Source of the DNA: Macrostomum lignano
Taxonomy: Eukaryota
Direction of reading: 5' to 3'
Length of the DNA: 22,626 bases
Assembly: GCA_002269645.1 (NCBI GenBank)
Contig: NIVC01003407.1
Coordinates: forward strand, 1-22,626
Shown: in pieces, positions 3,504 to 22,626 of the stretch
Position numbering within the stretch: the first letter of the stretch is position 1
How the letters are laid out: every line of letters starts with the position of its first letter
The notes under the pieces: generated by a model
Database searches by the model: none
Told to the model about the DNA's origin: nothing
The model's input: only the letters and a program-made list of their open reading frames with translations
Translations under genes and position numbers: made by a program

Positions 3504-3599
3504 GGTAGATAAATTCAATCACTCTCATGGCTCTCGCTAAATCTACAGTTCATCAACTCCGCAAACCTCGCATTCGCAGTCAACTAAGCCGCAACGAGC

Positions 3600-3925
3600 A
3601 TGTCCAAGTTCCGACCAATTGTTGCTGTTGCATCTCTGCTTTTGTTGCTGCTCCTAGTAGTAGCACCGGACACCGCACTCGCAAGATGCACCCGGAGCCC
3701 TGTTTTGAACCGGCTGACTTCTGTAGAGAGACCGGCCACGGCGGCTTCACGTTCTCACCCGATGGCTGCAACACCTGCCGGTGCACTCAGGACGGCCAGC
3801 TGGAGAGCTGCACGATGGTGATGTGCCCGCAGGATATGAGCGACAAGGCCTGGACTGATCATTGCGCCGAGCTGCGTCGCAAGGCTGAGGCGCCGATCCC
3901 AGTGCAGGAAGACGAAGCTCTGTAG
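3600..3925 (+). CDS. Small secreted pacifastin-like (CNxCxC...CTxxxC) serine-protease-inhibitor precursor, ~108 aa, broken by a 1-nt frameshift near 3684-3700
   Basis: Frame from ATG 3600 gives a signal peptide MSKFRPIVAVASLLLLLLLVVAPDTALA. The overlapping frame (ORF 3527-3925) gives C-RETGHGGFTFSPDG-CNTCRC-TQDG-QLES-CTMVMC, matching the pacifastin consensus C-x9-12-CNxCxC-x2-3-G-x3-6-CTx3C except for a 14-residue first gap. Adding one base joins the two frames. Confidence 0.65.
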
Positions 3926-4449
3926 GACTGGAAATTACACCTGCTCACGCGTGGGCTTCATGTTTATTCAGATAGTTCAGCATTGCAGCTGCTTCAATTG
4001 TTGAACCGAAATACAATGCATCAGTGTTTTATGATGTGTGGTCAAATTTATTTGAAGTTAATATCACAGAAAACATCGTAACGATTGTAGTTAATTTATT
4101 TTCTAAGCCAATCGAACCTCCGCTCGCACCGATTAGCTACTGAAGATTCCTTGTTGTCTATGGTAAATGCGTTGCAAGCTGCAGCACTGATTCATAGAAA
4201 ACCCTCTCCTGTTCAAGCTTTTAGAAGTTGAGTTTATCATATTTTCTCAACCATTCGGTAAGCCTGCAAAATGGTTACAATAGGATTAAAAGAAGCTATT
4301 TAGGTAAATGATTATGCACATCAAATTAATAAAACTTTTGACGACTTCTATTGGCGTGTCAATATTTACACATCCCAAAAAACATGCAATGCAATGGCTG
4401 GCTTCGTGGAGCAAAATTATTCTCCAAATTTTAACAGACGAAGAATTTG

Positions 4450-5376
4450 TGGACGACCGGACTGCTGTCACTGCCGACAACATCCAGCGCATCCAGGCTC
4501 TGGTTGACATTGACCAGCGTGAAAGTCAGGGAACTTGCGGCAGACACTGGACTCTCTGACCCGCAAGTCATTGAGATCCTGCACCAGCATCTTCATCTGT
4601 CCAAGGTTTCTGCCAGATGGATCCCACGAATCTTGACAAGGGACCAAAAGACCGCACGGGTGCAGTACTCAAAGCTTGTCCTGGACTCCTACGATCCGGA
4701 CCCTGCCAACTTTCTGTCCTGCTGCGTGACCGGGGATGAAACGTGGATCCATCACCACGATCCCGAGTCCAAGCAGGAGTCCAAGCAGTGGCTGCCAGTT
4801 GGTTCACCTGCACCACTGAAGGCACGGACTGCATGCAGTGCGGCAAGATTATGCTCACCGTCTTCTGGGATGCCAAGGGCCCGCTGCTGCTGGACTTTCT
4901 ACCGCACAAGCAGACAGTCACAGGCGCCTACTACGCTGACCTGATCGCCCGTCTGCGCGAAGCAATCAAGGAAAATAGGCGAGGGATGCTGAGCCGAGGT
5001 GTTGTGCTGCTGCACGACAATGCGCCGGCCCACACTAGCAGGATTGCCAAGGCTGCTGTCAGTGTCGCAGGGTTTCGAGAACTGCCGCACCCAGCCTATT
5101 CACCAGACCTGGCCCGAGCGACTTCCACCTGTTTCCACATCTCAAGCGGCGCTCCGTGGACAGCGATTTGACACTGATGATGCGCTGAAGATGTGCAACT
5201 GCTTGGTTTGAGGGCTGTCGTGCAATTCTTCCAGAGTGGCATTGAGGCGCTGCGATTCAAGATGCCATAAGTGCATGCTTGGTTGGGGGAGACTATGTTG
5301 AGAAAAGCTGATCTCACTTTGCCCATATCTCCTCTCTTTCATATTAAGGCTCAGAACTTTAATAGTGCCCCTCGTA
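4450..5376 (+). mobile_element. Mariner (Tc1/mariner, D,D34D) transposon relic, 5'-truncated
   Basis: Motifs across shifting frames: RWIPRIL (WVPHEL equivalent), VTGDETW, IMLTVFWD, LLHDNAPAH, YSPDLA(P)SDF, terminal GDYVEK (stop 5309-5311). 34 residues separate the HDN and SDF aspartates. The right end reads TA-CGAGGGGCACTATTAAAG on the minus strand with TA at 5375-5376. No matching left TIR seen. Confidence 0.93.
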
Positions 5377-11607: not shown

Positions 11608-12023
11608 CCTCAGGTGCTTTTTAAACTTTACAATAGCAATCCGGCCTGCTTGTCTCTTTTCAGCTCTGCTTTTCTTTCTCCTCTCTTCTCTCCTCTTTTG
11701 TTTCCTCTCGGACGGATGCGGCACGACAATCAGCTTCTCGTGCTCATTGAACTGGTCTTAAACGTGCTCTACACGTTTCTATGTAGAAAATATATAAATA
11801 AATAAGTTTTATGAAATTGGGCAAACAGAGAGGCCTGAATATGAAAATAGCGTGCACTCAGCAAGGAACCTTGACATAGTGTATCAAGCGCGCGTTTGAG
11901 CAAAGCACTCGAAAAAGAGGAATGTTGCCAGTTTCAGGTAAATAACCCGAAATTGAGCCCTGGATCCCAAATACTGTACAATCCAACTCTGTATTTGTGA
12001 GCAAAGCCAGAGCTCTATAAGTG

Positions 12024-12030
12024 TATAAAA
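12024..12030 (+). promoter_or_regulatory. Candidate TATA box of cGLR gene
   Basis: TATAAAA 81 bp upstream of ATG 12105. Confidence 0.5.
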
Positions 12031-12104
12031 GTTTGACAGCAAAAGGCAACAAAAATTGTTCCAAAGAAAAACTTCGCAAGTCCCTATACGTGAGGTATTT
12101 AAAT

Positions 12105-13865
12105 ATGGCGCACGACCTCGCAGCTCACAGCCGATCGCTGTCCTCAGCCATGGCGACTGCCGGGTTTCGCTCAACAAACGCAGCGGTGCAGAGCGGCCTC
12201 GCAATGGCAGCTGAGGAGCTGGGCCGACTGCTGGCTAAAAGCTGCCACATCTTTGGCAGCTACGCTGACGGCTGGGGCTCCAACCTGTGCTGCATCAATG
12301 GAGACGTCGCTCCAGACTCCGACATCGACGTGACGTACATCATGACAGACGCGAGCCAGCAAATCCACATTCACCCGCAAGTCGCTGACGGACAGCGGGC
12401 CGAATTTCGACACAACGACTGCCAGCTGACTGAGCCTGCGGAGTACGAGGACGGGCACGTCAAGGCGCGCGTTCGCAGTAAGGAAATTCTCGCTATAATA
12501 TCATACTAATGCATTAGATATGAAATTTAGATATGTACAGAAACGAAATATATCATCTACATCTGTCCTGAAAATGCAGTTTTAGCGCCGAATATCGCAT
12601 TGGAAGTGTCGCAGATGTTGCCTGCAATAGACCTGATTTTGGCGCATTCCTGCTGCGGCTACCCTCACATCGAGCTGCTGCGGCCCGGATACAGGACTTG
12701 CATGTCCGATGACATCATGAGGGCGCTCAGAGAAGAGGTGCTGGGCGAGTCGCCAAGGTGCCACGCCGTCAGCAGCGCGCCGCCCGGTCTGGAGGGCAGC
12801 CGACTTCGAGTGAGCACAACCCTGCTGGAAAGGTCCGTCATGCAGCATCTCACCACCGTGCAGGGTCAGTTCTTCATCCTCGTCAAGTTCCTCATCAAGA
12901 GGGTGATCGGCAGCAGAGTGAGCGGTCTGAAGACGTACGTTGGCAAAAACTTGCTGTTCTACATGCTCGACGAGACACCGGCGAAGGACTGGAAGTCGGA
13001 CAACCTGCTGGCGCTGGTGCAGCACTCGTTGGACATTCTCGTGGCAATGATGGAGAGCTCAGACTCCGAGGACGCCTGCATGAGACATTTTTTCTTGCGT
13101 GACGCCAGAGTGTTCTTCAAGCGAGAGCACGACTCAAAATCGAGGATTGTAGCAGCCGTCCGTCAGTCAGCAGACAACCTGCTCAGCGACCTGAAACCGT
13201 TCAAAGAGTCTCTGCCTAAATTTGAGGTCAACGTGATTCTCCTTTCGTTTATCTCTTACTACCTTCTAGCAGTAGAGTTACTGGAATGCAGTGATTTCAG
13301 CTTGACAAAATACGCTTCCACAATGCAGACGGCAACTGAGCTTTGGTTAAGCATCAGGAGTGAAGCTCCGGTCGGGTCTCGGTCTGGCAGATTGACTCAA
13401 CTTTTGTCGGACGTCGAGCGCCAGATTCCAGACAGCGCTCAGGTCGGCAAAGCCTATCTCAGAGCCGCTGCTCTCTTCAAAATGGGTCAGCTTGTCACAC
13501 CAGAGCTGGAGGAGGCGGCAGGTGCATCTCTGGGCTATATTCGGTGTCCGGAGGGCGACGACAACTCCCTGACGGTGGCTTCGGCCAAGTCACTAGCTGT
13601 GGACAAGCTTGTGCAGACTCGCTGCCTGGGTGTCACAGCGGCAAACGGCCAAATAGTGGACTGCCCGAAGCTGGTTAATGAATACGGGCCGGTTGTGTCT
13701 TTGTTTGAGAAGCACCTGTGCGGCTTCAAAGTGACGAGGCAGCAAATGCTTCTGGCCTTGGCTTCCGGCTCCCTTTGCGCAAGACTCTGGATGAGTAATG
13801 TGAGTGCTCAAGAGATCGGGGGTCGCTTGTTTATTATTGGAAATGAGCTCTATTCACTCTTTTGA
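12105..13865 (+). CDS. cGAS-like receptor (cGLR) / Mab-21 nucleotidyltransferase, two exons (12105-12477, 12580-13865), ~552 aa
   Basis: NTase signature HIFGSYADG (G 12255), SDIDV (Asp 12321, 12327) and third Asp in AIDLILAHSCCGYP (12630). Mab-21 C-lobe motifs RVSTTLLERSVM, FILVKFLIK, LKTYVGKNLLFYML, DWKSDNL, MRHFFL. Phase-compatible GT-AG intron. No stops or frameshifts. Confidence 0.88.
12478..12579 (+). other. Spliceosomal intron of cGLR gene (102 nt; alternative acceptor at 12585)
   Basis: Donor GCA|GTAAGG; AT-rich interior containing the stop of ORF 12021-12509; acceptors TGCAG (12579) and TTTAG (12585), both phase 1, restoring the frame of ORF 12600-13865. Confidence 0.8.
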
Positions 13866-14903
13866 GCACCCAATTCCTAGTTAGTAGCAAAAATGGAATA
13901 CGAGCGTAGAAACGTTAGGGGAGAAAAGCTTTTAACTAGCGCCGCAGCTTCAAACTATATGCTTGAATAGAAAACTCCTGAATACTAGCGATTGCGCAAT
14001 AGGTGTCTAAATACAATTTGCACTGGTCCAAATCGAACACAAAGCACCATGCTCCGTTCTCCGCTTCAAGGCAACCGAGTACAACTCAAGGAACACTATA
14101 GTGGGCAGGCATCTGCGTCACTTGGATATTTTTAGGCAGATCAGCGTTCAAAGACAAAGCGGTCGGCAGCAAGACGCTCAAGACGGAAGAGGGGACAATC
14201 GAGGAGACCCAGACGAGTCACGAGGCGATTCGAATGACAAGAGTTCCCAACAATGAAACCATATTAGACAGCTACTCTCGTGAATTAATTAAAAGTTCAA
14301 AGCAGCTACAAGTGCTGAAAAGTATCTCGACTATCTAAAGTGAATTTCTGACTCTGCAAAATTCAGATGTTAAAGCCCTAACCGCGCTCACCCTAGTTAA
14401 CGACAGCAAGCTTTAATATTCTATACTTTTTCTAATTGTAGAAATTTTGATGGGATATTGGATATCTGTTTAACCCAGTCCGACGATTTTCACAATTTTT
14501 TATCCGAGCTGTTTGTCATGAAAAGTTGATGTGGAAGCGTAGCTCTTTACTTATTTCGACTGCTGATTAGCACTTCTTTGTCTTTGTAATGAACATGCAG
14601 CTGCCTAATCATGAAGTGAAGACGCTTCTAAAAATGGTATATAGTTAAGGAGACTGTGAATCATATTTCAAACGGTAAAAATAACCACACGACAACATGG
14701 TAATTCTGATTGGGCAGATATGAGTCTGTTTTCAAACGCTTCAAAATGAATTCTTAAATTGACAGAGGCGTAAGCGTAAGCAGGAATTCTAATTGGAGGG
14801 TGCCGCAACCTTGATTGGTGCAAATATTTGGTTTTCTTGTCTCTAGGTGGGCATCCCTTTCTCTTGGTGGGCGCCCAGCTGTCTCTTGATGTCCACGCCA
14901 GTC

Positions 14904-15143: not shown

Positions 15144-15253
15144 AGGGTTTAAAAGACACAACACAATGTCTATGGCAAAAGTTCACAGAAAATCAAGCAT
15201 TCACATTGGGCGATAAAAATCAGGAGGTCTTCGCTCTCTGGCCGACCGTCTCG

Positions 15254-15428
15254 GCAGCTGAGCCTCTTGCTGATTGGTCTCGGTCGCTGCAGCTGAGCCT
15301 CTTGCTGATTGGTCTCGGTCGCTGCAGCTGAGCCTCTTGCTGATTGGTCTCGGTCGCTGCAGCTGAGCCTCTTGCTGATTGGTCTCGGTCGCTGCAGCTG
15401 AGCCTCTTGCTGATTGGTCTCGGTCGCT
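15254..15428 (-). repeat. Five perfect 35-bp tandem repeats in the integrase C-terminal tail
   Basis: Plus-strand unit GCAGCTGAGCCTCTTGCTGATTGGTCTCGGTCGCT at 15254, 15289, 15324, 15359, 15394. Confidence 0.97.
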
Positions 15429-18400
15429 GTCTCATCCGGTCCGCCGTTACCGTCGAACAGCTGCACCCAGGCATCAGGCGCCTGGAGCTGAGGGTCAACC
15501 AGTCCGTCAGCAGCCTCATCTGCGGTAGCCTGCAGGTCGTCGCCGGGCCGTAAGGAGTTGCGCCGTTCCACAAATGGTTTGAGCCGGTCGTGGTGCACCA
15601 CCTGCCTGCGTCGCATCCGCACGCCGGGACCCGAGGCCGGCCGCACTCGGTAGTTGACCTCGCCGAGCCTCTTCAAGATGATGTACGGCCCGGTCCAGCG
15701 GTTACTGAGGCTTTTTGATCTGCCAGGTTTCACCACCTTGCAGCTCAGCATCACCAAGTCGCCCTCTTTGTACGGCCGGAACCGAGTCTCCATGTTGTAC
15801 CGCTCGTTGCGCTCGGTCTGTGACGCCTGCAGTTGCTGATGGACACGCGCCCGGCTGTCCAGCAGGCGCCTCTGAGTTGCCTCTGCAAAGTCCAGCGCAT
15901 CAGTGAAGCCATTCAATGCTTTGGGCAGCTTCGAGTCGATTGGCAGCCTTGGTGGCCATCCGTGCAGCGTCTGGTACGGCGACAGGCCCGTGGTCGAGTG
16001 CACCGAGCTGTTGAAGGCCCACGTGACGAAGGCAAGTTGGAGGTCCCAGTCGTCCTGATCCTCTGCCACAACCGTCGCTAGCATGTCACCAAAGGTTCGG
16101 TTTCCGCGCTCGACCAGGCCGTTGCCGCTGGGATGGAAAGGCAAAGTGCGGCTTTTCTGCATGCCGAGCCGCTGGCACAGGGACTGGAACAGATGGCTTT
16201 CGAATTGACACCCTTGGTCGCTGTGGATTGCGTCTGGGACGCCGTGCCGAAGCGCTACCTGCCTGACCATAGCGTCGGCCACCCGCTCAGCCTCGATGCT
16301 CGGTAGAGCGCAGGTCTCCATCCACTTTGAGAAGCAGTCAAAGATGCTCAGCACGTAACTGTTGCCTCGTGGTGTCCTTAGCAGCGGACCCTTGATATCG
16401 ATCTGGACCATCTCCCATATGGCCTCGACGGCAGTGGAGTCGCTTGCAGTGGTGATCGCTGCGGCCGACTGCTGTTCTTCCGCCGAAGACAAGCGGCGCA
16501 GCTGGCGACCCAGTTCTTGACGTCGTTGTGCATGCCCGGCCACCAGCAGCGGTCGGCGAGCTTGTCCAGCGTTCGGTCTGTGCCGAGGTGACCGCTGCAG
16601 GCGGCGTCGTGCGCGTCAGCCAGGAAATGCGCACGCAGGTGGCTGGGCACCACCGGTTTGCCCTGCCGGACCAGCTCACCGTGTTGCCCGATCTCGATGT
16701 CGCCATTTGCTATGAATTCTTCGAATCGCTGCTGACAGCCTTTGGACAGGTGGACGAAGCTGTCACTGATCGCCTTGAAGACATTCTGCAGAAGGCTGTC
16801 TCGGAGCTGCTCTGCCAGGAAGTCATCGCGATTTGCTAGTTGAGTGACAGCCGTCCGACTGAGCAGGTCTGGCACCACGTTCTCCCGCCCTGGCCGATAG
16901 CAGAGCGCGAAATTGAACTGCTGGATGGTGTCGAGCCAACGTGCCAGCCGACCCTCTGGCTCCTTGGTCTGCAGCAGGCCCTTGAGCGGCTGGTGATCGG
17001 TAACACAGTGAAGTCTTTCACGTTGCACAGGTAGGCTCTGAAGTGCTTGAGACTCCAAACCAAGGCGAGCAGTTCCCTGTCAGTGGCCGAGTAATTTCGT
17101 TCCGCCTTGTTGAGGGTCCTGAAGGCAAACGCCACTGGAAGCTCCGCGTCTCCGTAACGCTGGCAGAGAACCGCACCCACTGCGATGGCGCTGGCGTCGC
17201 AGCTCAGGACAAATGGTCGGCTGAAGTCCGGCAGGCGAAGCACAGGTGCTCGCCCAAGTTGGTCCTTGAGCGTCTGGAAGGCCGTCTCGCACTCGTCTGT
17301 CCAGGTGAAGCCCGTCTTCTGTGTTGCAGCATGCAGTGGTGCTGCTGTCTTGCTGAAGTCCCTGATGAATCTGCGATAGAAGCACAACATACCGATGAAT
17401 CGTCGCACCTCCTCGGCAGAACTTTGTTACTGAATCTTGGCCAGGGCCTCCACTTTGTCCGGATCCGGCCGAATTCCTTCCCGGCTGACGATGTGGCCCA
17501 GGTACTTCACGCTCCTGTGAGCGAACACCGACTTGTCCTTGTTGAGCTTCAGTCCCGCAGCTCGCAGCCTGTCAAAAACTTTGCGCAGGCTGGCCAGATG
17601 CTCTTCGAAGCTCCGACTGAACACGATCAAGTCATCCACGTAGACTAGCACCTCCTCCCAGGTCAGGCCGGACATAACGAGCTCCATTAGCCTCTGGAAG
17701 GTCGCAGGAGAGTTGCAAATACCGAAGCCCATCTTCTTGAACTGCATAAGGCCTCGCGTGGAATAGAAAGCAGTCTTGTAGCGGTCTGCCTCGTCGACCA
17801 CGACCTGGTTGAGCCCCTGCTTGCAGTCGATGGTGGTAAACCAAGAGCAGCCCGCCAGAGCATCCATCGATTGTTGCAGGTGCGGCAGGGGGTAGGCGTC
17901 CTTGATGGTCACAGCGTTCAACTGACGCCAGTCGGTGCATAGGCGGATGTCGCCGCTCTTTTTCCGGACGACGATCAGATTGCTGGCCCAGGGCGAGTTG
18001 GACGGCTCAATGATGTCGTGCTCCAGCATCTGGCCGATTTTCTGGTCGACCTGGTCACGAACCGGCAGCGGAATCGGTCGCTGGCGCTGCTTGTAGGGCT
18101 CGCTGTGGAGCCGAGGTCGTACTCGTGAGTGCTGAATAGGTCACCGTTCGCCTTGAGCAGTGCCAGTAGTCTCTGCCTTTCAGCCGCATCCAAGTCAGGG
18201 TTGACATCCCAGCAGTCCGACTGCTTGACTGTGCCAGCGCTGTTGTTGATCAGGTCGGCAGCTTCAAAAGAGCCGACGGCCTTGTTGGCGTAGAGCAGCA
18301 CCTCCTCGGAGCCTAAATTGCACACCCGGACTGGAATCTTCTGATCAGCTGAAACGGTCAAAACTCTCGAGACAAGCAAACCAGTCGCTTGGGTAAAGTT

Positions 18401-18927
18401 GGCGTCGGGCTCGAAGATGCCTTGCTCGTCTTCCGACTTGACGCGGAGCCACACCAGCTTTTCGCTGCGTGCTGGAACACTTGTGTTGCTTTCCACTCGA
18501 GCAACGAGGGTGCCGGTCACCATTCGGACGCTTGAGCTGCTGTTGAAGAACGGGACTTTCTCTCCGTTGAGGCATACGGTCCTACCAACGATGTCGATCT
18601 GAAGCTCTCGGGTGGCTTGGGTGATGAAGTCCATGCCGAGGATGAGATCCAGACTGATGTTCTCCACCACGTTGAGCTCGTGGACGACCTTGACTGACTG
18701 GCCGACTTGAATTGTGGCTCGGGAAATCCCGATGCAACTCAGGCGGCCACCATCGACCGAAGTCGGGCAGCAGCTTTCACCGGGCTCGATCTGAAGGCCG
18801 CAGACTTGCGCGAGGCTGCGGCTGATCAAGGATGTCTGTGCGCCAGTGTCGAGCAGGAAACTGACCTCCTTGCCTTGCAGAAGCGCACGCACGAAGATGG
18901 AGAGTGCAGATTGGGCACTTGATTGAC

Positions 18928-18970
18928 GGGTTGGAGCTGGCCCTTCGCTGCCAACCCTCAGAAGTTTCCC
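18928..18970 (-). promoter_or_regulatory. Programmed -1 ribosomal frameshift signal at gag/pol junction
   Basis: Slippery heptamer G GGA AAC (18970-18964); gag stop TGA (18960-18958); 6-nt spacer; then stem GGGTTGG/CCAACCC (18957-18928). pol is in the -1 frame. Confidence 0.8.
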
Positions 18971-19370
18971 GACGGCCGAGCCTTTGACGGACAGACAGCC
19001 GCGCCGTGGCCCCAGCCGGAGCAGTTGAAGCAGCGACCTTGGCCCTGAGATCCGCCAGCAGGGCACGGCGGGCGATGTGGCCTTCCTTACCGCACCGAAG
19101 CAGCCTGATGACCGCTGCTGCTGATCTCTCTGTCTGCCGCCACCGCGTCCTCTCGCGCTGCCGCCCCTCGTCACCGCAGCCGTCAGGGTCTCCAGCTGCT
19201 GCTCCAGCCGTGCCAGTCGATCGTCAACCATCGCCACTGCGGGCGAGTTGCCTGGTTTGCATTTTCTCGCGATTTGCTCCAGCCTCGTGGCCTGCTCGAC
19301 CAGCTCCTCCAGCGTGCAGGAGTCCAGGTCCCTGTCCTTGAGCAGGGTGTCGCAGTCATCAGCTGAAGTC
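18958..19370 (-). pseudogene. gag: Gypsy gag C-terminal fragment with two zinc knuckles
   Basis: TLEELVEQATRLEQ capsid-end motif; knuckle 1 CF-CGKEGHIAR-C (two 1-nt losses at ~19095 and ~19066); knuckle 2 CFNCSGWGHGAAVC intact; ends GNF*. Confidence 0.85.
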
Positions 19371-21496: not shown

Positions 21497-22626
21497 TCAA
21501 TTTTCTGATGACATGCACAACAAATTCGTGGCCGGAAATCTGATCGTGCTCCTTCTGGCTGGATTTTTACTGTTGGTTGGGTCGCACAAGTAGACATCGT
21601 TTCGATGCCTCTTGCACACGAAACTAGCGCAGTTGGCACAATTTTTGTTTCGCGTTTCAGCGAGTACTTCTCCGCACTTGTGCTCCTTTCCGCCTTGCAC
21701 AGTCGGCATCGCCCTCGCTCTCCTGCTGGCCGATCGGCGGTAGCGCATTCAGATAGCTGATAATTTGGTTGAATTTTCAGCACCGTGTTGAAAAGACTAC
21801 GTAGATGAATTGACATGCCGGTTTGGGTCATTCGCACGGCGTTCAATCTGCGGTGGAAGCAACCCGGAAGCAGCTTGAAGGAGAAATTCTTTGCGAGTTA
21901 GGCCCGTGTGACCTGAAAGACGGTAAACCGTATGTCCGTTGATCCACACCACATTGAGCATGTGTCCAGTGAAAATTGTCTTTTCAAGACAGCGCGATAT
22001 GCGATGGCAGTTCATAGTGGTAACCATTCTGTTGATCGTGTCGGTGCCGGCCTTCGTTGCGTTGTAGTGCTGGATCAGCTCTGGTTTGTTTTTTGGAGGC
22101 ACACGTCGGCTGTCATGGTGATTAGTGGATAACAGAATTACAGTCCTCCGCTTGCTTGAGCACGCACGACTGTAAGAGGCCCGTCATAAAGGAACTCCGG
22201 CTGACTTGGTCTCTTGTTGCCCTTGAACTGAGGTGGCAGGCGATCAGCGGTAATGTTTACCCAAAAGCCTTCAAAGTTGTCGGATAGACGAAGCAGCACT
22301 TGCTCGCCACTCTAGTATTTGCCGACGCCACCGCTCTCCGCTTTCATCAGCAGGTTGTTGTATGCGGTGTACAATTCTGACTTGTACACATAATGCAGTG
22401 TGTCACTGCTTTCTTCGATCGGATTTCGAGCAGTCGTTGCCATGAAAAACTTCAGGCCGTTTCCTGCTGGCTTGTCCTTCATGAAGACAGCAAAGCTGCA
22501 GTCATTGCTATAGTATCGAATGAGTTGTTCATCGATACAAATGTAGGCTCCAGGCAGGACGGGCATTGCGAGGCGATCTTGAAAAGTGCTATACAGAGCT
22601 CGAATGCCGTAAATCGATCTCTGGCA
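21497..22626 (-). pseudogene. piggyBac transposase (DDE_Tnp_1_7-like core plus Cys-rich C-terminal domain), inactivated
   Basis: ICIDEQL...KDKPAGNGLKF (Asp1), NITAD (Asp2), KPELIQHYNATKAGTD (Asp3), C-terminal CRLC...CANC-x4-CKRH. In-frame TAG at 22312-22314, an apparent deletion after NITAD, and several frameshifts. Confidence 0.92.

Follow-up and report, generated by a model that had tools for sequence, protein, structure and literature searches.

Flatworms are usually cited as having lost cGAS-STING, but Macrostomum lignano instead carries dozens of genes that resemble those of cGAS-like receptors (cGLRs). One such locus lies on contig NIVC01003407.1 of this flatworm (assembly GCA_002269645.1), of which we analyzed a stretch of 22,626 nucleotides (nt), referred to below as the window. 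The locus raises two questions: whether the reading frame that starts at position 12105, described in a first-pass annotation of the sequence as an intact and catalytically complete cGLR, belongs to a working gene, and whether its product could make a nucleotide signal. Judged from its sequence, the locus is a functional three-exon gene (12105-14256) coding for 592 amino acids (aa), a stand-alone member of an expanded Mab-21/cGAS-like nucleotidyltransferase (NTase) family. The designation "cGAS-like receptor with a complete active-site motif" is supported for the predicted protein at the sequence and fold levels, because profile alignments, structural matches obtained with Foldseek, retention of the motif among paralogues and the ratio of nonsynonymous to synonymous substitutions (dN/dS, or omega) agree with it.

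Gene structure

The frame opened by the ATG at 12105 encodes, by direct reading of the sequence, FGSYADGWGS (with G51-S52) and DSDIDV (with D73 and D75). A phase-1 intron of 102 nt extends from the GT donor at 12478 to the AG at 12578-12579, and joining across it keeps the frame and leads into LPAIDLILAH, which contains D142, and the long helical region of the Mab-21 lobe. This junction between the GS/DxD half and the half carrying the third Asp had been proposed in the first-pass annotation, and the same phase is found in paralogues. The 3' end proposed there, a stop codon at 13865 closing a protein of ~552 aa, had to be abandoned. A second intron of 271 nt and phase 0, running from the GTGAGT donor at 13800 to the AG at 14069-14070, and a third exon had been missed, so that the stop at 13865 is not used and the product is 592 aa long. 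When the closest database proteins (P0001, P0002 and P0003) were compared to the window with tblastn, their C-termini matched 14071-14253 rather than the stretch up to 13865, and exon 3 also matches the C-terminus of another M. lignano protein, P0171. Splicing of intron 2 yields LWMSN followed directly by ATEYNSRNTIVGRHLRHL and, at the end, SSQQ and the stop codon, as in P0001, P0002 and P0003. The 552-aa model was rejected in favor of a three-exon gene of 1,779 nt, and its last 22 aa (VSAQEIGG...YSLF) are intron. The features of the gene are as follows.

12024-12029 (+): TATAAA hexamer, possible core promoter element, found by pattern search 76 nt upstream of the start codon
12105-12477 (+): exon 1, aa 1-124 and one base of codon 125, with the N-terminal spine helix and the first part of the NTase core (ATG at 12105, GT donor at 12478; the P0171 model starts at the homologous MAH..LAAHS..LSSAM, and the intron position and phase are common to loci L001 and L003)
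12255-12260 (+): codons G51-S52, the "GS" activation-loop motif, by sequence reading (G in 75/78 and S in 75/78 family domains)
12321-12329 (+): codons D73-I74-D75, predicted [DE]h[DE] metal-binding pair, by hhalign (D73 in 77/78, D75 in 74/78)
12478-12579 (+): intron 1, 102 nt, phase 1, GT..AG, with the acceptor matching ...VRILAPN... in P0001, P0002, P0003 and P0171
12580-13799 (+): exon 2, aa 125-531, covering what remains of the NTase core, then the Mab-21_C helical lobe and the C-terminal extension
12630-12632 (+): codon D142, predicted third catalytic Asp, equivalent of human cGAS D319, by hhalign (D/E in 70/78)
12912-13154 (+): Mab-21_C (HhH/H2TH-like) match, aa 236-316 (Pfam PF20266, E=5.2e-5, 23.7 bits versus a cut-off of 24.1)
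13212-13799 (+): C-terminal extension, aa 336-531, predicted family-specific helical domain with one small beta-hairpin and a conserved IPDxA/PDCAR motif (omega 0.36)
13800-14070 (+): intron 2, 271 nt, phase 0, GTGAGT..AG, the first 66 nt of which were read through in the earlier model
14071-14256 (+): exon 3, aa 532-592 plus TGA, low-complexity charged tail (tblastn with P0001/P0002/P0003; low predicted local distance difference test score [pLDDT]; omega ~1)
14288-14293 (+): ATTAAA polyadenylation-type signal, found by pattern search 32 nt past the TGA; no other AATAAA/ATTAAA occurs in 13801-14700

The reading frame is intact, and paralogues have the same splice structure. The NCBI-annotated paralogue PAA85217.1 (P0171, 596 aa) opens with the homologous MAHRELAAHSASLSSAM and has the same C-terminal tail. 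We could rebuild exactly the NCBI exon models of P0171 (locus L003, 84% identity) and P0005 (locus L001, 40% identity); each gene consists of three exons, its first intron being of phase 1 and splitting the same aligned codon, its second of phase 0. The peptides that would be read through from intron 2 differ in both length and content between the window gene and its L003 paralogue.

Two in-frame AG acceptors are found 6 nt apart at the end of intron 1 (12578-12585, cag and then ttttag), the first of which is taken by the annotated paralogues. Use of the second (12584-12585) would remove Ile-Leu-Ala and add Thr, giving an isoform of 590 aa. As the main form this alternative was rejected, since all annotated paralogues have ...VRILAPN... 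here.

Relationship to cGAS and cGLRs

Comparison of the window protein with PDB sequences by phmmer gave no match, and the link to cGLRs and cGAS comes only from profile and fold searches. The family profile matched a single PDB entry, cGLR1 (8gjy, E=0.007), over the Mab-21_C region. Aligned with hhalign to proteins carrying Mab-21 and Mab-21_C, the family gave a value of 99.8% (E=2e-28) over 294 columns, which begin with the N-terminal helix and extend through Mab-21_C, pairing DSDIDV with SDxDVM and PAID..A..CC.YP with D.V.A..C..WP. These distant Pfam-positive proteins match in turn PDB cGLR1 (E=9e-38) and cGAS (~E=4e-23); their vevDlviAf aligns with ISVDITLAL of human cGAS, and their SDxDVM aligns to DEFD of 8gjy in a weak separate stretch (3.3 bits). 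Direct hhalign of the family to human and mouse cGAS and two cnidarian cGLRs, with sequences taken from Table S3 of Li et al. (2023), gave 94.3% (E=1e-7) and covered D142 onwards only. It pairs LPAIDLILAH with KISVDITLAL, and so D142 with D319, the same pairing that was reached transitively through the distant proteins.

The structure was modeled with AlphaFold2 for P0001, which is 98% identical to the window protein (pLDDT 74, predicted template modeling score 0.78). In a Foldseek search of the PDB the best match was Cv-cGLR1 (8gjw, E=9e-7), followed by dozens of cGAS chains and then MAB21L1; the top matches had E values of ~1e-6, a probability of 1.00 and a template modeling score of ~0.5 on the target over ~350-380 columns. 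The modeled fold is shown by these matches to be the two-lobed cGAS/cGLR fold. Together with the hhalign result and a Mab-21_C score close to the Pfam cut-off, they bear out the Mab-21/cGAS-like identity given in the first-pass annotation.

Active-site motif

Li et al. (2023) recognize cGLRs by G[S/G], followed within 8-20 residues by [DE]h[DE]h and after 50-90 by h[DE]h, in addition to homology across the NTase core and the C-terminal helix bundle and predicted structural homology to cGAS/cGLR. The window protein reads G51-S52, 20 residues, D73-I-D75-V, 64 residues, I-D142-L (IFGS-X20-DIDV-X64-IDL), with a GS-to-DxD spacing at the upper limit of this rule. The 294 columns aligned by hhalign extend across both lobes, and Foldseek provides the structural homology with the P0001 model. 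All that the published definition lists (motif, two-lobe homology and predicted fold) is present except the residue before GS. The three metal-binding Asp residues claimed from the sequence at first pass align by hhalign with the cGAS triad. We take D73, D75 and D142 to correspond to cGAS E225, D227 and D319, and GS to cGAS G212-S213. Retention was counted in the 78 family domains that span the motifs; individual values are listed above, D142 being D in 68 and E in 2 more, and the full motif is retained in 66/78.

The loop between GS and DxD is family specific. Its insert (12264-12320, aa 54-72) has invariant G56, W57, G58 and G66, and the loop measures 20 residues against ~11 in cGAS, ~9 longer. 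A loop of this length, at the upper cGLR limit and with its own invariant GWG...G, might belong to an active nucleotidyltransferase of different chemistry, one producing OAS-like linear 2'-5' oligonucleotides or nucleotidylating RNA or protein, all the more as the entire Pol-beta-like NTase superfamily shares the GS...DxD...D core. We find this improbable, considering that fold and profile searches rank cGLR1 and cGAS first, rather than OAS or poly(A)/TUTase (terminal uridylyltransferase) enzymes, and that the second lobe matches Mab-21_C.

Selection and the C-terminal extension

The window gene was compared to its 84%-identical L003 paralogue (P0171) by the Nei-Gojobori method (dS 0.16, Fisher test). 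Omega was 0.48 for the whole coding sequence (p=3e-5), 0.46 for the core (aa 1-335, p=0.0025), 0.36 for the C-terminal extension (aa 336-531, p=2e-4) and 0.99 for the exon-3 tail (aa 532-592, p=1.0). Values significantly below 1 in the core and extension therefore indicate moderate purifying selection on these parts, which had been suspected before from the absence of lesions.

The same data bear on whether the gene is a recently duplicated and disused copy, unexpressed or decaying, whose frame is open by chance. Several copies with 84-98% identity do exist, the tail evolves neutrally (omega ~1) and remains of mariner-like, Ty3/gypsy and piggyBac-like transposons surround the gene. Nevertheless, 1,779 nt are open over three exons with canonical splice sites, every motif residue is intact, TATAAA and ATTAAA hexamers flank the gene and the core and extension are constrained even at a dS of 0.16, and we regard a disused copy as highly improbable.

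The extension of 196 aa is conserved in the aligned paralogues, together with a PDCAR-type motif, which reads IPDSAQ in the window protein. AlphaFold2 predicts helices and one small hairpin, with a pLDDT of ~70-90 in the full-length model and 68 when modeled alone. The first-pass annotation had noted an uncharacterized region of ~200 aa, and this part of its description stands. Its suggestion that the region is TPR-like was rejected: neither TPR nor any other Pfam family was found in the extension at E<=1, and the extension modeled alone had no Foldseek match in the PDB better than E=1.3, with a single TPR entry at E=5.9. The extension is a predicted family-specific helical domain, while the low pLDDT of the exon-3 tail suggests that it is probably disordered.

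Expansion of the family in Macrostomum lignano

A search of 5.8 billion proteins with the 552-aa query gave 15 matches, all of them from M. lignano, the best 84-95% identical over the query. The 592-aa model reaches 98% identity to the best annotated M. lignano "Mab-21 domain-containing" proteins. Its nearest UniProt entries are A0A1I8J9H0, A0A1I8HXT9 and A0A1I8IF86 (>=98%), the first of which (P0169) differs from the window protein at ~4 positions. At the other extreme, paralogues diverge to ~26-40% identity. Run against 1.84 billion cluster representatives, the family profile gave 687 proteins with E<=0.001, of which 76, as clusters at 50% identity, had E<1e-30, and all strong matches whose name was looked up are from M. 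lignano. Weaker matches (E ~1e-11 to 1e-17) are proteins of ~650-740 aa, such as P0100 and P0124. By sequence, the window gene is part of a large cGAS-like expansion that was found in this analysis in M. lignano only.

Most of these M. lignano genes keep the catalytic motif, and all those examined share the extra C-terminal domain. Some members also carry ankyrin repeats, a second cGLR-like domain or a caspase in the same protein. P0071 (PAA59752.1) and P0167 (PAA80948.1) have, in this order, a cGLR-like domain, ankyrin repeats and, at the C-terminus, a caspase (Peptidase_C14), and their catalytic motif is degenerate (GS, D, N, S); such an arrangement suggests the direct fusion of a sensor with a cell-death protease. 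P0016 (A0A1I8GXZ3, 1,346 aa) has two tandem cGLR-like domains (aa 22-342 and 768-1081), which recall the multidomain fusions of the OAS2/OAS3 type, and long N-terminal ankyrin arrays are present in many other paralogues. No tandem array of family genes was found at the paralogue loci L001 and L002.

The M. lignano family has already been catalogued as predicted cGLRs (Li et al., 2023). In Table S3 of that work, five M. lignano proteins appear as clones for the cGLR screen (entries 89-93: PAA86972.1, PAA45980.1, PAA57558.1, PAA93208.1 and PAA68676.1). They have in common with the window protein GS[FY]x[DE]GWG...SD[IV]D, PA[IV]D..A..CC.YP, RVSTTLLER and CM.HFF, as well as the conserved C-terminal extension containing PDCAR. 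PAA57558.1 is the sequence of P0006 (in the construct, with extra N-terminal residues) and shares 41% identity with the window protein. None of the five is the window gene, which is another paralogue and does not appear among the table entries available. Beyond the corrected gene model the window copy contributes little, given that the family has been catalogued before and that annotations exist for close paralogues; the wider expansion in M. lignano is of more interest than this single copy.

Putative function

The most likely reading, which we hold with moderate confidence, is that of a ligand-gated cGLR-type nucleotidyltransferase making a nucleotide signal. Fold, motif and constraint were observed, while activity would follow by analogy. 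Like characterized cGLRs, the protein would rest in an inactive state until some ligand switched it on, and would then condense nucleoside triphosphates into a nucleotide second messenger. The 196-aa helical domain and the 20-residue GWG...G loop would be the likeliest regulatory or ligand-sensing parts.

Several observations speak against such an enzyme. The first-pass annotation had named the Pfam models Mab-21 and Mab-21_C as a check; Mab-21_C stays just below its gathering threshold, and the Mab-21 NTase model (PF03281) gave no match to the window protein at E<=1, although the paralogue P0171 reaches 24.2 bits with PF20266 and several others carry this domain. The superposition of the P0001 model on cGAS/cGLR structures is loose, with a root mean square deviation of 5-11 Å, and selection on core and extension is only moderate (omega ~0.5). 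The core is acidic (isoelectric point of 6.15), unlike the basic nucleic acid-sensing cGLRs of Li et al. (2023). Also, the published h[QT]GS form is not followed, since F50 and not Q/T precedes GS. Across the family this residue is V in 41, F in 18 and T in 11 of 78 domains, and Li et al. (2023) allow in their methods a less strict form with G[S/G] only and accepted paralogues with V, M, L or T at this place. In the same work, the groups named as active are insects, anemones, molluscs, hydras and corals, with flatworms not among them; the five M. lignano candidates carry no "active" note in Table S3. Finally, cGAS and STING were reported as lost in Schistosoma (Wu et al., 2014), and a 2026 planarian study found neither in Schmidtea.

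Some of these points would fit better a non-catalytic Mab-21-type protein, either a nucleotide binder or a scaffold or adaptor, in which the acidic residues are kept for ligand binding or fold stability. Roles of this kind have been proposed for MAB21L1 and MiD51, and both are among the structural or sequence relatives found here. The triad-less P0071 and P0167 show that the fold is put to non-catalytic use within the family itself, and both the acidic core and the lack of any paralogue flagged as active in the screen of Li et al. (2023) point in this direction. We consider a non-catalytic role unlikely, if a serious candidate: GS, D73, D75 and D142 are kept together in those 66 domains despite ~26-40% identity between paralogues, and the fold and profile searches alike place cGLR1 and cGAS above MAB21L1 and MiD51. 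As to the screen, Li et al. (2023) themselves point out that unknown ligands make many cGLRs seem inactive in vitro.

An active member would offer a genetically tractable flatworm model for cGLR signaling and a way to test whether such signaling runs without STING. As regards a STING or other receptor for the product in the same genome, M. lignano does not appear in Table S5 of Li et al. (2023). Going further, the Macrostomum family might represent a STING-independent cGLR-type system that arose in, or was kept by, an early-branching flatworm, the pathway having disappeared from parasitic flatworms and planarians. Its C-terminal domain and GWG insert would then sense a non-nucleic-acid ligand, and it would have a new product or effectors. 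This is speculative and, in our opinion, rather unlikely, although the ankyrin and caspase fusions of the paralogues hint at a direct link to cell death.

Surroundings of the gene

The DNA of the window is eukaryotic and rich in transposon remains. A Ty3/gypsy-type pol (protease, reverse transcriptase, RNase H and integrase) occupies 15170-19237 on the minus strand and is considered degenerate because it is split over at least five overlapping open reading frames (ORFs) in different frames; its integrase ORF ends in a duplicated peptide of ~35 aa (RPRPISKRLSCSDRDQSARGSAAATETNQQEAQLQ). The earlier remark that the cGLR-like gene is the only long frame without lesions is roughly right, as this split pol accounts for the remaining long ORFs (457 and 420 aa). 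A frameshifted mariner/Tc1-like transposase lies at 4447-5171 on the plus strand (PF01359, E=1.6e-16), and a weak piggyBac-like fragment at 21797-22102 on the minus strand (PF13843, E=1e-3). The ORF at 3527-3925 on the plus strand has a Pacifastin_I serine protease inhibitor domain above the cut-off (PF05375, E=5.8e-7) and is probably an exon of a neighboring gene. When 167 family and related proteins were compared to the window by tblastn, neither an upstream ankyrin exon nor further family fragments were found outside 12000-14300.

Comparison with known systems

The nearest relatives beyond the proteins named M. lignano are the Mab-21 proteins of 650-740 aa (P0100, P0124 and others; 99.8% by hhalign), which like the family have GSxxEG and SDxD motifs and a long extension after Mab-21_C; some of their profile matches run beyond the core, to profile position ~414. 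Their motifs resemble those of bivalve cGLRs in Table S3 of Li et al. (2023). They differ in lacking the GWG...G loop insert and in mostly passing both Pfam thresholds, Mab-21_C being comfortably reached in 9 of the 10 scanned and Mab-21 also in 8. Their long C-terminal regions are partly TPR-like, with a sub-threshold TPR_2 in one of the 10 (P0113) and none in the extension of the window protein.

MAB21L1 (PDB 5eog and 5eom) has the same fold, with a partial structural match of ~200-240 columns, but according to Li et al. (2023) it has a developmental role and no predicted functional active site, whereas the window protein keeps the full motif. Human and mouse cGAS share the fold with the window protein at ~12-14% identity, with D142 equivalent to D319 in SVDITLAL, RVSTTLLER to WRLSFSHIEK and CMRHFF to LENYFIP. 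Unlike them, the window protein has neither an evident Zn-thumb sequence nor a basic N-terminal tail, and adds the 196-aa helical domain and a tail of 61 aa. Oyster Cv-cGLR1 (8gjw) and cGLR1 (8gjy) are the best structural match and the sole direct PDB profile match, respectively, with the two-lobed Mab-21 fold, GS loop and acidic triad of the window protein at only ~13% identity. They are shorter (~350-376 aa, without the C-terminal extension), their GS-to-[DE]x[DE] loop has ~11 residues versus 20, and Cv-cGLR1 is an enzyme activated by double-stranded DNA (Li et al., 2023), while the core of the window protein is acidic.

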